From the IMG/VR virus record IMGVR_UViG_3300029258_003221, positions 1-64,000 of that record: 64,000 bases of DNA. One strand, written 5' to 3'. The notes below the pieces were generated by a model. That model saw nothing but the letters and a program-made list of their open reading frames with translations. It made no database searches and was not told the origin of the DNA. The position numbers and the translations under genes are program-made. The first letter of the stretch is position 1, and every line of letters starts with the position of its first letter. Shown one piece after another: positions 4,219 to 40,205 of the stretch.

Positions 4219-4752
4219 TTGGGCTGTTTCTCAATGAGCATAAAATGCGTATCTGATATTGATCGCCCGCTTATTGTCGGTGAAAGATACAAAGTAGAAT
4301 GCTTGAAGGCCAAAATAGGAAAACGGTTATTTTGGTTGCCTGTTCTTTGTTCACATGTTGGAGATTTTTCAGAAGAAAATCATTTTCATTTAGACAGTCG
4401 ATTTCTTACTGATTTCTTTTATAAATTGCTTAATTGGAAGCCACATTATGTTTTTGGCGTTCCTGATGATCAGATTTTAGGCAAAAGACTGAAGATCAAA
4501 ACTTGTGTACGCCAATTTGGAATTCCACACACAGATCAAGTTGATACTTTTCGCAAACTTCAAAATCTTTGCAAAAACAGAATTGTCAATTGTTTGACCT
4601 GCCCCCATCAAGGTGTTGATCTTAGCCAAGTGCCTGTCACAAATACTTTAAACGAATCTGTTCGTTATTGCCCGGCACATGGGTTGAAATGGAGTGCAGA
4701 AGATGGAAGAATGATTGAAAGAGACTCATTTTTTGAAATTTCCGGCATATGA
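4219..4752 (+). CDS. Protein with a C-terminal Rieske-like [2Fe-2S] motif
   Basis: TCPHQG ... YCPAHGLKW (CxH / CxxH pair). Confidence 0.6.
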   Translation: MGCFSMSIKCVSDIDRPLIVGERYKVECLKAKIGKRLFWLPVLCSHVGDFSEENHFHLDSRFLTDFFYKLLNWKPHYVFGVPDDQILGKRLKIKTCVRQFGIPHTDQVDTFRKLQNLCKNRIVNCLTCPHQGVDLSQVPVTNTLNESVRYCPAHGLKWSAEDGRMIERDSFFEISGI

Positions 4753-4753
4753 A

Positions 4754-4933
4754 ATGCTGTGTTTACTAAAGTCTTTATTGGTTATTGTGTCTTTCGTGTT
4801 GTTTGGCACATCGATTCAATTGATGATTTTGGGAAATTTTTTGATTGGGGGCTTGCTTTTGATTCCCGCTACAGATATACTTCGAGACATCTGTGAAACT
4901 CAAAAGAGTTTGGCACACCAGTTGCATAAATAA
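4754..4933 (+). CDS. Small membrane protein
   Basis: Two hydrophobic stretches; start refined. Confidence 0.4.
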   Translation: MLCLLKSLLVIVSFVLFGTSIQLMILGNFLIGGLLLIPATDILRDICETQKSLAHQLHK

Positions 4934-4978
4934 GCCACAGACATTAATTTCACTGTCATTTTGACACAGGAGAAGATC

Positions 4979-5329
4979 ATGAAACCCGACACGTAGAACG
5001 TCAAACATTACAGCTATATCTTTGTCAGGGAAGACCTGACAACCTCTCAGCAGGCGGTACAATGCTGTCATGCCGCCATCAACGCCACTGCCAAATACGG
5101 TCTAGGCGATTTGCCAGACCATCCTTATCTTGTCATCTTGGCAGTCAAGAATGAATCCAAGTTGCTCCGGGTACAAAAATACCTGTCAGAGCACGGAATT
5201 CAGTTCTCTTCTTTTCACGAGTCTGATCTCGATAATGAGCTTACGGCTATTGCGACCGAGCCCATTAAAGAGCATCAACGTGCAATCTTCCGCAAGTATC
5301 AGTGCCTTAAACCAAGGGAGGCTGCGTGA
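4979..5329 (+). CDS. Pth2-like peptidyl-tRNA hydrolase with an in-frame TAG at codon 6 (4994-4996)
   Basis: AGGAG-N6-ATG; MKPDT*NVKHYSYIFVREDLTTSQQAVQCCHAAI...FHESDLDNELTAIATEP. The Pth2-type VRxDL/QxxHAA motif lies upstream of the ORF-track start 5111, and no alternative start codon lies between the TAG and the motif. Confidence 0.8.
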
Positions 5330-5511
5330 TGAGTCAAATCAAAGACCTTATCGAAGAACTAAAATCTCTTACCCGTTATGACATGGAAGTCAGAGAATAT
5401 GGTCGAACCAAATTTCGTGATTCACATGCTGAAGCACGTGAAGTGGTTTCTGGAGATGGAGACTGGGTGGAGTGGGAAGATATTGTTTATTTGATCAAGG
5501 AGTATGAATGA
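5326..5511 (+). CDS. Hypothetical protein
   Basis: ORF track; GTGA overlap with the upstream gene. Confidence 0.6.
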   Translation: MMSQIKDLIEELKSLTRYDMEVREYGRTKFRDSHAEAREVVSGDGDWVEWEDIVYLIKEYE

Positions 5512-5521
5512 GTTTGAATGT

Positions 5522-5671
5522 GGGACAGAGGTGGATTGGTTCACACAAACCAACAATTTGTTGTTGGCCTGCATGGGTTCGAGTCCTGACAGGATGCAAT
5601 GAATTGTTGGGGAGGCAGAATTGCCAGCCGTTTTCGGAACGGCCTTGCAGGTTCGATTCCTGCCTGTCCCA
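5522..5671 (+). ncRNA. Expanded tRNA-like RNA (150 nt)
   Basis: Perfect acceptor stem GGGACAG/CTGTCCC; Leu-like D-arm; perfect T-arm GCAGG-TTCGATT-CCTGC; long variable arm GCCGTT-TTCG-GAACGGC; extra hairpins where the anticodon arm should be. Confidence 0.6.
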
Positions 5672-5676
5672 CTTAT

Positions 5677-5751
5677 GGGTGCGTAGCTCAATTGGCAGAG
5701 CAGCGAGTTCTAGCCTCGTGTTTGTTGCAGGTTCGATCCCTGTCGCACCTT
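5677..5751 (+). tRNA. tRNA with anticodon CTA (amber suppressor), Trp-like body, no encoded CCA
   Basis: Cloverleaf: GGGTGCG/CGCACCT; GCTC/GAGC; GCGAG-TTCTAGC-CTCGT (CTA at 5710-5712); GCAGG-TTCGATC-CCTGT. Confidence 0.85.
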
Positions 5752-5756
5752 TTTTA

Positions 5757-5914
5757 CCGCAGGTAGCTCAGTTGGTAGAGCGTTGCTTGTGTTGAAGCTA
5801 AGACAATGGTGTACAACATTGAATTAGTGAATGCACACGTGCTGTCAAAAGTGGCCACTTTTGGCTGTCATGTAAACATAGCAGAGGTCGGAGGTTCGAG
5901 TCCTCAACTGCGGA
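5757..5914 (+). ncRNA. tRNA-like gene whose anticodon loop is replaced by a 92-nt structured segment
   Basis: CCGCAGG/ACTGCGG; GCTC-AGTTGGTA-GAGC; anticodon stem TTGCT(5783-87)/AGCAG(5880-84); AGGTC; GGAGG-TTCGAGT-CCTCA. Confidence 0.65.
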
Positions 5915-5954
5915 ATATTTTCATTTTTCCCCGGATAGAAAGGAAGAAGTTGTG

Positions 5955-6356
5955 ATGTAGAAATGGCATTGGAATCAAAAACTTGGACCTGAAAACTGTC
6001 CATACATGGTGCGATGGGTGTTTGATTTTTACTTCTTCACCATTCGTATTCATCATTGGCTTCATAGTGACGATTTGCGTCACCCCCATGATCATCCTTG
6101 GTCTTTTTGGGCCATTTGTTTGTGGGGCGGATACACAGATGTTTCACCAGATGGCGAGGACCGAGTGCGACCGGGAAGTGTACGGTTTCGCTCGGCTCTT
6201 CACCAACATTCTGTTAAAGTTGATGAAGGTGGATGTTGGACCATCCTTTTGACAGGACGTGAGCATCGTCGTTGGGGTTTTTGGGTTAATGGTAAGTTTC
6301 GTAAAAGAAACAAGTATTTCTATATGATGGGTCATCACAATCCATGTGATTCATAA
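5955..6356 (+). CDS. Cupin-like phage protein with an in-frame TAG directly after the start (5958-5960)
   Basis: AAGGAAG RBS then GTG ATG TAG AAA TGG CAT TGG, giving M*KWHWNQKLGPENCPYMVRW...HHWLHSDDLRHPHDHPW; the ORF-track start 6006 lacks an RBS. Confidence 0.7.
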
Positions 6357-6944
6357 AACTTTCAACCAGTCACTCACGAAGTTTTGATCTGGCCAACCCA
6401 ACAATGTTGAATTGTAATTAGACAGTTTTTTAAAGATTGCACATTTTTGATTTCTTTCCATGAGTTTCCAATGCTTGTCTGCCATTAAAAACCTGCATGT
6501 GTAATTAACTGCTTCAAGCAAAACATCATCAAACATCACAAATCCTCCGACTTTGATGTTCCTATGAGTGTAATACCAATCAATCATAGGAATAGGGAAT
6601 TCATGTCCTCCATCTACCAAAACAAAGTCGTATTTTCTTTTCCCCATCACTGGCAGTAATTTGTCAGATGGGCCTTGGGTGTATTTGACGTTGTCCAAAG
6701 AGATATCAATTTCTTTTGCGACATCGTCAAGCTTGTTCATGAAATCATGCTTGAACAAAGAAATTGCTTGGTGGCTTTTAGAACGTTCTGCAAAAAAGAT
6801 GGTTGTCAGCCCGGCTCCTGTTTCAAGTGAAACTCCTTTTTCTGGAGCATATTTGTCTATCATTTGATAAACAAATTCATCCATGCACCCATGAGTGTGT
6901 GGTTTGTGTCTGAAAAAGGAACTCAACGCTTCATGATAATTCAT
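6351..6944 (-). CDS. Class I SAM-dependent methyltransferase (Methyltransf_24-like)
   Basis: LETGAGLTT, FVLVDGGHEF, VGGFVMFDD motifs. Confidence 0.85.
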   Translation of the reverse strand: MNYHEALSSFFRHKPHTHGCMDEFVYQMIDKYAPEKGVSLETGAGLTTIFFAERSKSHQAISLFKHDFMNKLDDVAKEIDISLDNVKYTQGPSDKLLPVMGKRKYDFVLVDGGHEFPIPMIDWYYTHRNIKVGGFVMFDDVLLEAVNYTCRFLMADKHWKLMERNQKCAIFKKLSNYNSTLLGWPDQNFVSDWLKVL

Positions 6945-37513: not shown

Positions 37514-38623
37514 TTATTTCACCTTTGCCGCCTTTCTACGGCACTCTTTGCACCGGGTAGCATAGCCATCGCTCTTAGAACTGTCTACCCCAAACTCTTC
37601 GAACAACTTCACGTCCTTGCATCCATTGCACAACTTCTTACCCTCGGCAGCATAGGGATTTACCTTCTTCCTCTTAGACCTCTTTCCAGCAATGGAGCCT
37701 CCCTCACGCTCACAGATGTAACGACCATTTCGGGCAATGTTCTTCTCGTGGGTCTTCCTGAGAACCGTGTGAGTCTCATTACAAAAATTGCATTCGACTT
37801 CGACAGTGTCTTTGGCAATCTTCTCGTCGTAATGCTTCTTGGCTTTCTTACGATTTAGCTCTTTTCTGTGCTCCACATAATCTACTCCATGGAGTTTACT
37901 CATTTCCTCATCAGCCCATTTGGTTGCTTCTCTGTCATTTTCAAAGCCAAGTTCGGCCTCAGACCATATCTCAAAATCGTAACCATTTCGATCAGCATAA
38001 GTCATGTTATCCATGATTTGAATTTGAACTTTGTGTGACTGAAGCATTCGTTTGGGTTTTACTTCTACCAACTTTGACTCATTGATCAAGAAGTCAGCAC
38101 TTCGATCACGTCCGTCAATTTTGAATCCAATTTGAACTTCGTATGTTTTCACACTGTCGTCTGCTTCTAGCAACAATATGGCCTTGAGTTCATAGGATGA
38201 TTGGAACGGGAAGGTTTTTCCCATTTTCTTTGATTGGTAAACACCTCTTCTGCGGGTGGGCTCAAAGTCATTGTTCCTATGACGTTTTGTTGTCAATCCT
38301 GCAAGGTATTTCTTCAAACGCTTGCCTTCAGGCGTGGCCCACTTTTTGTTAGCTGAATCACGCATTTTCTGTTTTGTTGCTTTGGACCTTTTGTAGCTGG
38401 TCGCTTCGGCAATGCGTTGGCGTCCCTCTTCAGTGTACACACGAGTGGGGATAGCATTTGCTGTGGCACACTTCTGGCAGATGTATTTGCCGTTCTTTTG
38501 GATGTTCTCTTTGGCCTTGAATTTACCGGGATGCTTTGTTGTGCCACATTGTTCGCAATCTATGGAAATGTGATCTTTGGCTCGAACCCCTGCATAGATT
38601 TGCTCAAACTCTTTTACATTCAT
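37514..38623 (-). CDS. TnsA-like PD-(D/E)XK endonuclease with Zn-ribbon and basic helical segments
   Basis: PFQSSYELKAILLLEADDSV...ADFLI...LVEVKP; several CxxC; AGGAG RBS at ATG 38623. Confidence 0.8.
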   Translation of the reverse strand: MNVKEFEQIYAGVRAKDHISIDCEQCGTTKHPGKFKAKENIQKNGKYICQKCATANAIPTRVYTEEGRQRIAEATSYKRSKATKQKMRDSANKKWATPEGKRLKKYLAGLTTKRHRNNDFEPTRRRGVYQSKKMGKTFPFQSSYELKAILLLEADDSVKTYEVQIGFKIDGRDRSADFLINESKLVEVKPKRMLQSHKVQIQIMDNMTYADRNGYDFEIWSEAELGFENDREATKWADEEMSKLHGVDYVEHRKELNRKKAKKHYDEKIAKDTVEVECNFCNETHTVLRKTHEKNIARNGRYICEREGGSIAGKRSKRKKVNPYAAEGKKLCNGCKDVKLFEEFGVDSSKSDGYATRCKECRRKAAKVK

Positions 38624-38650
38624 AGCTTTCTCCTTAATCTCTAACATCGG

Positions 38651-38679
38651 AGAATAGCAGAAATACTTGAGTGAATCAA
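38651..38679 (-). promoter_or_regulatory. Sigma70-like promoter for the TnsA-like gene
   Basis: TTGATT-N17-TATTCT. Confidence 0.6.
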
Positions 38680-38701
38680 GTCCCTTTACAAGTTTTTTGC
38701 C

Positions 38702-38734
38702 AAAACAAAAAGCCTCACCATTTCTGGTGAGGCT
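38702..38734 (-). terminator. Terminator after the major capsid gene
   Basis: agcctcacca-tttc-tggtgaggct; T-rich on the minus strand. Confidence 0.85.
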
Positions 38735-38765
38735 CTTGTTCGTTTCAGTTGCTAAGCAGCTAAGC

Positions 38766-40205
38766 TTAGATGATGAAATTCGCCACGCTCATGCGGGCAT
38801 AGAACTTCGATCCTTCCCTTAACAACTTTTTTCCATACCGAGTCAAGATTCCCTTACGAGGGCAGAAGCTCTCAGGATCAAGCACTACGGGTGTTTGTGT
38901 CAGTGGCACGTAGGGACAGTAGAAATATCCCGAGTCCATGTAAGAATCACCTTTGTATCCCATGAGGATTTGACCTTGTGGGAACAGAGGGTCTTTGTAG
39001 AGACGCCATCTGTTGTTGATCGTACCAACATACTGAATACCAAGACTTGAAGTGAAGGTTTCAGAAGGTGCAGGTGCGAAACCAGCAGTAGCAGTTTCGA
39101 AGATAGAAGCAACTTCAGGGCTTGTGACAAGCCAGTTACATCCGCCTCTGAGCGTCTTACGGTGAACGACGTTAGAGACTTCGACAACCTTGATGTACAG
39201 GGCTTCGTACTTCTCTTTGATAGTGTCACCGAGTGCTGTATTGAAGTCCCAAACAGCGACAGTACCGGCGTTGTTACGCAGGTCAGTCAGAACCTCACGG
39301 TCGATCTCAAGATTGATTTCCTGAGCGAGGACAGCAGTCAATTCTGCCTCTGCATCAAGGTTGTGCTGAGATCGGAGGTCTTGCTGAGCTTCATAAGACC
39401 AGACAGCTTTGAGCTTACGGGTCTTAGCAGCAATTTCTTCAGATTCGACAACCAGATTAACTTCTGGGAGGTCTTGGTTGCATTCCATGTTGTATTCGTA
39501 AGAAACAACAGCGTGGTTTTCACCGGGATCACCGTCCCAAGTGAAGGTCATTTCGCCCGTGGTCAGGTCAATCGATCCGCTTGTAACAGCAGGAGAAGGA
39601 GCAGATCCAACGTTGGAGAAAGTGAAGGTTCCAGCTTCAGACACAACAAATGTCTGGATAGCGGTTGATCCATCATAGATGGTACCAGTGAGAGTACCAG
39701 CAAGGATAGGAGTGTGCTCAAGAGCACCGAAGGTGGAGGTTGTATCGCCACCGGCATCCGTTGTGGTAGTTTCATTCTGCACGAACTGATGCGTGTAGTA
39801 GATTTCCAAGTTTCCATCACCGGAAGCCAACTGCTGGAGTGATGTGCTGTCATCCGATGGGAATCCAGCGTTCAGATCAGCACCTCTCATGGCACCTTTG
39901 TTGCTGGAGTAGCGGAATCGCAGGTAGTACACCAAACCAGTTGGGCCGAGCAATGGTTGCACGGAAACAACTTTGTTTGCGATCAGTTGTGGGTAAATTC
40001 TTCGCACAAGCGGAATAGAAATTCGCTTGAACTGAGCGATGTCACCTGTGTCGGTCATGGTCTCATTGATGAGACGCTGGTTTTCCAGAAGCACAGCGGC
40101 TGTGGAACGTTCAAACCGATCAGAAATGCCATCCAGCATCTGAGTTCGACCCCATTTGGCTTCGATCTTAGCTGCTTCGTTTAGATATTGAGCATTTGCA
40201 TTCAT
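38766..40205 (-). CDS. gp23: Major capsid protein, T4 gp23-like
   Basis: IPLVRRIYP...VQPLLGPTGL...RKLKAVWSYEAQQDL...EINLEIDRE...GYFYCPYVPL...KGILTRYG. Confidence 0.97.
   Translation of the reverse strand: MNANAQYLNEAAKIEAKWGRTQMLDGISDRFERSTAAVLLENQRLINETMTDTGDIAQFKRISIPLVRRIYPQLIANKVVSVQPLLGPTGLVYYLRFRYSSNKGAMRGADLNAGFPSDDSTSLQQLASGDGNLEIYYTHQFVQNETTTTDAGGDTTSTFGALEHTPILAGTLTGTIYDGSTAIQTFVVSEAGTFTFSNVGSAPSPAVTSGSIDLTTGEMTFTWDGDPGENHAVVSYEYNMECNQDLPEVNLVVESEEIAAKTRKLKAVWSYEAQQDLRSQHNLDAEAELTAVLAQEINLEIDREVLTDLRNNAGTVAVWDFNTALGDTIKEKYEALYIKVVEVSNVVHRKTLRGGCNWLVTSPEVASIFETATAGFAPAPSETFTSSLGIQYVGTINNRWRLYKDPLFPQGQILMGYKGDSYMDSGYFYCPYVPLTQTPVVLDPESFCPRKGILTRYGKKLLREGSKFYARMSVANFII

Follow-up and report, generated by a model that had tools for sequence, protein, structure and literature searches.

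A cupin gene in a phage genome fragment carries an in-frame TAG at codon 2 that is most likely a conserved lock, read by a predicted amber-suppressor tRNA encoded 207 bases upstream. A second early TAG interrupts the neighboring PTH2-like (peptidyl-tRNA hydrolase 2) gene, and cultured phages CBB, BF, ME3, and RsoM2USA also pair an amber-interrupted PTH2-like gene with a tRNA-CUA. There is no direct evidence of translation, and suppressor-tRNA-dependent translation of this small gene module is the likely, though inferred, reading.

The window analyzed is 64,000 nucleotides (positions 1 to 64,000) of IMG/VR record IMGVR_UViG_3300029258_003221, a 234,631-bp fragment estimated to be 44% complete. 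The initial annotation described a cupin-like gene with a TAG-blocked N-terminal extension, an annotated ATG at 6006 without a ribosome-binding site, and an extension inferred to belong to the domain. Each of these elements was supported. The suppressor tRNA, the second amber-interrupted gene, and the recurrence of the pattern had not been noted. Features of the module, all on the forward strand, are as follows.

4968–4972 (+), Shine-Dalgarno-like AGGAG, 6 nt before ATG 4979.
4979–5329 (+), PTH2-like gene: ATG-K-P-D-T, in-frame TAG at 4994–4996 (codon 6), then 110 codons to the stop.
5326–5511 (+), 61-aa ORF of unknown function with no family hit.
5522–5671 (+), tRNA-like RNA with a large structured insertion in place of the anticodon arm.
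5677–5751 (+), predicted amber-suppressor tRNA, anticodon CUA, canonical cloverleaf, no encoded CCA, G37 in the anticodon loop.
5757–5914 (+), second tRNA-like RNA with about 83–100 nt inserted in the anticodon arm, ending 41 nt before ATG 5955.
5938–5946 (+), Shine-Dalgarno-like GAAAGGAAG, 5 nt before GTG 5952 and 8 nt before ATG 5955.
5955–5957 (+), proposed true start codon of the cupin gene, with GTG 5952–5954 as an alternative.
5958–5960 (+), in-frame TAG, the proposed suppression site.
5961–6005 (+), 15 codons (KWHWNQKLGPENCPY) with the predicted first beta-strand and the conserved LG...CPY motif of the cupin domain.
6006–6356 (+), remainder of the cupin ORF (116 aa as mechanically called), stop TAA 6354–6356.

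No ATG, GTG, or TTG lies between the TAG and 6006, and no Shine-Dalgarno-like motif precedes 6006, whereas AAGGA precedes 5952/5955. The TAG is not a sequencing error. It is present in four independent assemblies of near-identical strains (L010, L011, L012, and L098; L numbers denote homologous cupin loci), and no variant at 5955–5960 appears in contigs of four public metagenome runs from seawater and sediment. Runs from at least five studies, 2018–2024, contain the phage. A Methyltransf_24 gene at 6351–6944 (-) converges on the cupin and overlaps its last 6 nt, and the cupin homologs of Bajun, RHph_Y1_11, and CcrColossus also sit next to a methyltransferase gene. A promoter and terminator scan of 4600–6600 gave no more sites than shuffles.

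The 15 codons belong to the cupin domain. Adding them raised the PHROG 4786 match from 106.5 to 114.2 bits and extended it by 12 profile positions. TBLASTN hits in cultured phages align from residue 1–10 of the extension, and homologs start 1–8 codons upstream of K1, so ATG 5955 is the ancestral start position. The nearest relative, L099, has AAA ATG TAG, with ATG directly before the stop. In an alignment of 36 homologs, Y15 of the extension is invariant and L8, G9, and C13 are nearly so, and H43, D44, H45, and H83 of the His-rich motifs are invariant. The residue opposite the TAG is variable, K in the nearest stop-free relatives. An AlphaFold model of the 131 residues has a mean pLDDT of 96.1, with residues 2–8 in a beta-strand at pLDDT about 95. 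Foldseek against PDB gave 253 hits at E ≤0.001, the best to the Thermotoga Mn-cupin TM1459 (E 1.7e-6, TM 0.60–0.72), consistent with a small metal cupin. PHROG and RefSeq label the family cysteine dioxygenase. However, a Pfam scan of the 116-aa and 131-aa forms did not match CDO_I and gave only a sub-threshold DUF5660 hit at 12 bits, and the PHROG hit (E 1.5e-32) shows membership in PHROG 4786, not CDO activity.

The tRNA at 5677–5751 was detected using ARAGORN and Rfam (RF00005, 52.2 bits over the full model, E 5.6e-10). ARAGORN labels it Pyl only because of its anticodon; it fits the general tRNA model well, with a normal D-loop and T-loop. It is conserved in L011, L012, and L098, with an ortholog in L100. 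Its nearest phage tRNAs are Lys, Trp, and Gln at about 75–77%; the acceptor stem resembles a phage tRNA-Gln(CUG), but a wider search gave the three equally, so the inserted amino acid is unresolved. The anticodon loop (5708–5714) reads UU-CUA-GC. The L100 ortholog shares G37, while most other phage CUA tRNAs collected have A37-A38, and A37 is probably the usual base in efficient amber suppressors.

The flanking tRNA-like RNAs (Rfam tRNA 29.4 and 33.4 bits) keep acceptor, D, and T arms but carry about 80–100 nt of structured RNA at the anticodon arm (fold z -4.5 and -2.4). With introns allowed, ARAGORN called the second as tRNA-Asn(GUU) with an 83-nt intron. Similar tRNAs with 60–125-nt insertions, or odd Val(AAC) elements, end 45–125 nt upstream of the cupin's conserved RW anchor in most homologous loci. 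In GC-rich loci L005, L006, L031, L037, L111, L122, L040, and L043, the 3′ end of a tRNA, some with an encoded CCA, runs in frame into the conserved cupin N-terminus, with no ATG, GTG, or TTG and no room for a ribosome-binding site. At G000 121538–121851, outside the window, ARAGORN called a tRNA-Leu(UAA) with a 240-nt insertion at position 38, the classic site of the group I intron of cyanobacteria and plastids. YrlA (Y RNA-like) Rfam hits at 5645–5701 and 5722–5782 are far below threshold, span tRNA junctions, and are likely artifacts. No Ro60/TROVE gene is present in the fragment, although a Ro60/TROVE + vWA gene (L015:1–1363) lies about 1.6 kb upstream of the tRNA-like cluster and a TGA-interrupted cupin in a relative.

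The PTH2-like gene was resolved by six-frame comparison with G003, a distant relative (IMG/VR contig of 238,888 bp). Its post-TAG piece matches Pfam PF01981 at 32.2 bits (cut-off 23; profile 4–103/115). The first canonical start after the TAG, TTG 5111, would remove 38 domain residues. The G003 homolog is 61% identical and reads AAGGAG, ATG TTG TAG, an early amber at a different codon. A strain about 14% diverged in public reads changes 4993, 4998, and 5000 but keeps the TAG. A search for related loci with the PTH2-like protein found only G003. The whole record was scanned for a Shine-Dalgarno, a start, up to 8 codons, TAG, and at least 60 open codons. Only two of ten hits look like real proteins, and both flank the tRNA cluster. 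At 37514–38788 (-), AAGGA, ATG, two sense codons, and TGA are followed by 47 open codons running into a 377-aa gene (37514–38647) with a C-terminal endonuclease VII-like domain, but the extension did not change the PHROG hit, so chance cannot be told from a gated TGA.

About 120 homologous cupin loci were retrieved at the DNA level, to avoid gene-caller bias, and anchored on the conserved RW. Of 96 non-identical loci, 29 have a TAG, one a TGA, and none a TAA within the first 2–8 codons, at anchor -14, -16, -17, -18, and -22. Examples are M(stop)KWHW, M(stop)NWKW, MR(stop)IIW, ML(stop)IKW, MS(stop)IWK, ML(stop)RQK, MS(stop)NPFSKW, MK(stop)IWN, MNII(stop)RQ, and the large MKFT(stop)[NG][EQ]KLG group. 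Apart from TGA at a conserved Trp in L042 and L121, no stop occurs elsewhere in the gene. Nineteen of the 30 have no ATG, GTG, or TTG between the stop and the core, and in L100, L101, L102, and L104 the codon at the 6006 position is CTT or TTA. The 13 codons after the stop are under purifying selection, with pN/pS of 0.17 in the window's subclade against 0.13 for the core, at saturated synonymous divergence, which suggests that they are translated. The base after the stop is a purine in 29 of 30 early stops, but this is uninformative because true TAG terminators in this genome are also 30 of 37 purine.

Stop type matches suppressor anticodon. A tRNA-CUA lies 260–710 nt upstream of the gated cupin gene in the window, L011, L012, L014, L018/G003, L098, L099, and L100. 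Many MKFT(stop)-type loci show none within the 1.5–2.5 kb examined, but the one complete genome of that type (G001, 363 kb) has two elsewhere. Nine lineages have a PTH2-like gene with an early TAG, and eight hold a tRNA-CUA in the same locus. The single lineage with an early TGA, L121, holds a tRNA-UCA whose acceptor stem and discriminator equal those of the CUA tRNAs of G003 and L099. The opal suppressor L121:1030 and the amber suppressors L177:5922 and L099:205 share the acceptor stem GGGCGTG/CACGCCC and discriminator, indicating that one tRNA scaffold has switched between stop codons. In contrast, L015/L016 carry TGA with no tRNA-UCA found in the 15.7-kb contig, and the odd tRNAs of L015 are not UCA suppressors. 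The order CUA tRNA(s), PTH2-like(TAG), tRNA-like RNA, cupin(TAG) is kept in the window, G003, L014, L100, and L024.

TBLASTN with the PTH2-like piece found homologs in many jumbo phages. In each of the following, the conserved Y-x-Y/C-x-F-V/I-R-x-D start of the domain follows the stop.

Pectobacterium phage CBB, leader ATG GCA CAA TAG AAT, tRNA-CUA at 289,995.
Serratia phage BF, leader ATG ACG CAC TAG AAT, tRNA-CUA at 289,666.
Acinetobacter phage ME3, leader ATG ACT TAG ATT, tRNA-CUA at c167,348, about 430 nt upstream.
Ralstonia phage RsoM2USA, leader ATG TTG TAG ATT, tRNA-CUA at c55,744.
595-kb phage LR756511, leader ATG ACT CAC TAG GTT, tRNA-CUA at c179,588.

RaK2, XacN1, and Xoo-sp13 have stop-free versions. 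A loose T-loop pattern search on three phage records was uninformative. In the complete ME3 genome, TAG ends 25 of 262 crude genes, and the PTH2-like gene is the only convincing early-TAG client. Public gene calls are inconsistent. Protein P0001 (98% identical) has Q at the stop, but its DNA (L010) also reads ATG TAG, so the Q is a gene-caller assumption. In the CBB, BF, and RsoM2USA records, the gene is called from a downstream codon or omitted; that of RsoM2USA is unannotated.

The fragment is not generally recoded, as far as the 44% examined shows. Treating TAG as sense lengthened ORFs no more than expected, TAG ends 44 of 347 crude genes (about 13%) in a gene model that can miss small genes, and in-frame ORF pairs separated by TAG are no commoner than those separated by TAA. 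TBLASTN of TAG-to-X extended ORFs against G003 gave four hits, all artifacts (a shared true stop or wrong-frame translations). No mid-gene conserved TAG was found, and one TAG terminator coincides with the G003 homolog's stop, although TAA and TGA controls show that the method is noisy and the fragment and G003 share few genes. No RF-1 domain gene is present in the fragment.

In the favored model, ribosomes load at AAGGAAG, start at ATG 5955, and meet UAG at once. With only host factors, release factor 1 would end translation after one or two residues. When the phage tRNA-CUA is transcribed, processed, and charged, it would decode the UAG to give the full 133-residue cupin, and the PTH2-like gene would be gated likewise. 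The tRNA would act as a trans-acting translational activator of its two neighbors. An early stop makes failure cheap and leaves no truncated protein. The two genes may be co-transcribed with the tRNA cluster, and gating potentially provides delay or dosage control tied to phage tRNA expression, though this purpose is a guess.

Other explanations are less likely. Ribosomes could terminate at ATG-TAG and re-initiate at the in-frame ATG 6006, making a 116-residue protein that lacks the first strand, with the mini-ORF tuning expression. Start codons at that position also occur in L014, L015, and L017, comparable start-stop elements and minigenes appear to exist in bacteria and lambda, and a truncated product is not excluded for this particular phage. 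However, re-initiation is unlikely given the absence of a start in 19 of 30 loci, the selection on and predicted strand structure of the skipped codons, the lack of a Shine-Dalgarno before 6006, which lies 45 nt from the stop, and the loss of 38 residues in the PTH2-like gene. It also does not predict the TAG/CUA and TGA/UCA match. Decay of the cupin by nonsense mutation beside a coincidental tRNA needs only a single-base change from AAG or CAG at a non-conserved position. It is strongly disfavored, because the TAG is kept in all strains sampled, early stops recur at five positions in diverged lineages with intact, selected ORFs, and a second gene in the module has the same feature.

Block-wise TAG recoding (code 15-like), as described for crAss-like, Lak, and Agate phages, is also improbable but not excluded in the unsampled part of the genome. 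Phage suppressor tRNAs go with stop-codon recoding (bioRxiv 10.1101/2021.08.26.457843), a public gene caller read this TAG as Q, and L121 and L042 have TGA deeper in the gene. Recoding does not explain why 29 cupin lineages place the TAG only in codons 2–8 of 131, nor the standard stop usage of ME3.

In the recoded crAss-like, Lak, Agate, and Jade phages, a phage tRNA-CUA or UCA is likewise predicted to decode in-frame stops and gate particular genes, and Borges et al. proposed that recoded stops time late genes. Those phages have many in-frame stops through structural and lysis genes and largely abandon the codon as a terminator, whereas here one stop sits in codons 2–8 of one or two tRNA-linked genes. 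The proposed competition between RF1 and a charged tRNA-CUA is that of laboratory amber suppression (supE/supF hosts, genetic code expansion), but this case is natural, conserved, and phage-encoded, with tRNA and clients linked. Read-through of the Q-beta A1 protein and retroviral gag-pol uses host near-cognate tRNAs at low frequency to add a C-terminal extension; here a dedicated cognate suppressor would be needed to make any functional protein. Lambda bar minigenes and bacterial start-stop sites share the short layout and a link to peptidyl-tRNA hydrolase biology, but here the frame continues into a conserved, selected domain.

Suppressor tRNAs are repeatedly reported in jumbo phages that otherwise use the standard code, and their targets have stayed unknown. 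XacN1, RsoM2USA, and Atu_ph07 have large tRNA sets, one or two suppressor tRNAs, and peptidyl-tRNA hydrolase genes. Read-through of the 18 amber stops of XacN1 revealed no target for its two CUA suppressors (PMC5852040), and the RsoM2USA and Atu_ph07 papers only speculate (PMC8504454, PMC6102473). No description of early-stop targets was found in five searches of open-access full text. It is more likely than not that in standard-code jumbo and huge phages the orphan suppressor tRNA is a dedicated regulatory RNA, a key that unlocks a small, conserved set of tRNA-cluster genes, a PTH2-like hydrolase in many lineages and also a cupin in this clade. If so, the targets in CBB, BF, ME3, RsoM2USA, and relatives are N-terminal stops, after leaders of 1 to about 7 sense codons, that gene callers hide by starting at the next ATG, dropping the gene, or translating TAG as Q. 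This would provide a system directly testable in cultured phages, a concrete annotation fix for PTH2-like and cupin genes in many phage genomes, a minimal natural two-part translational switch, and a plausible first step on the path to full stop-codon recoding.
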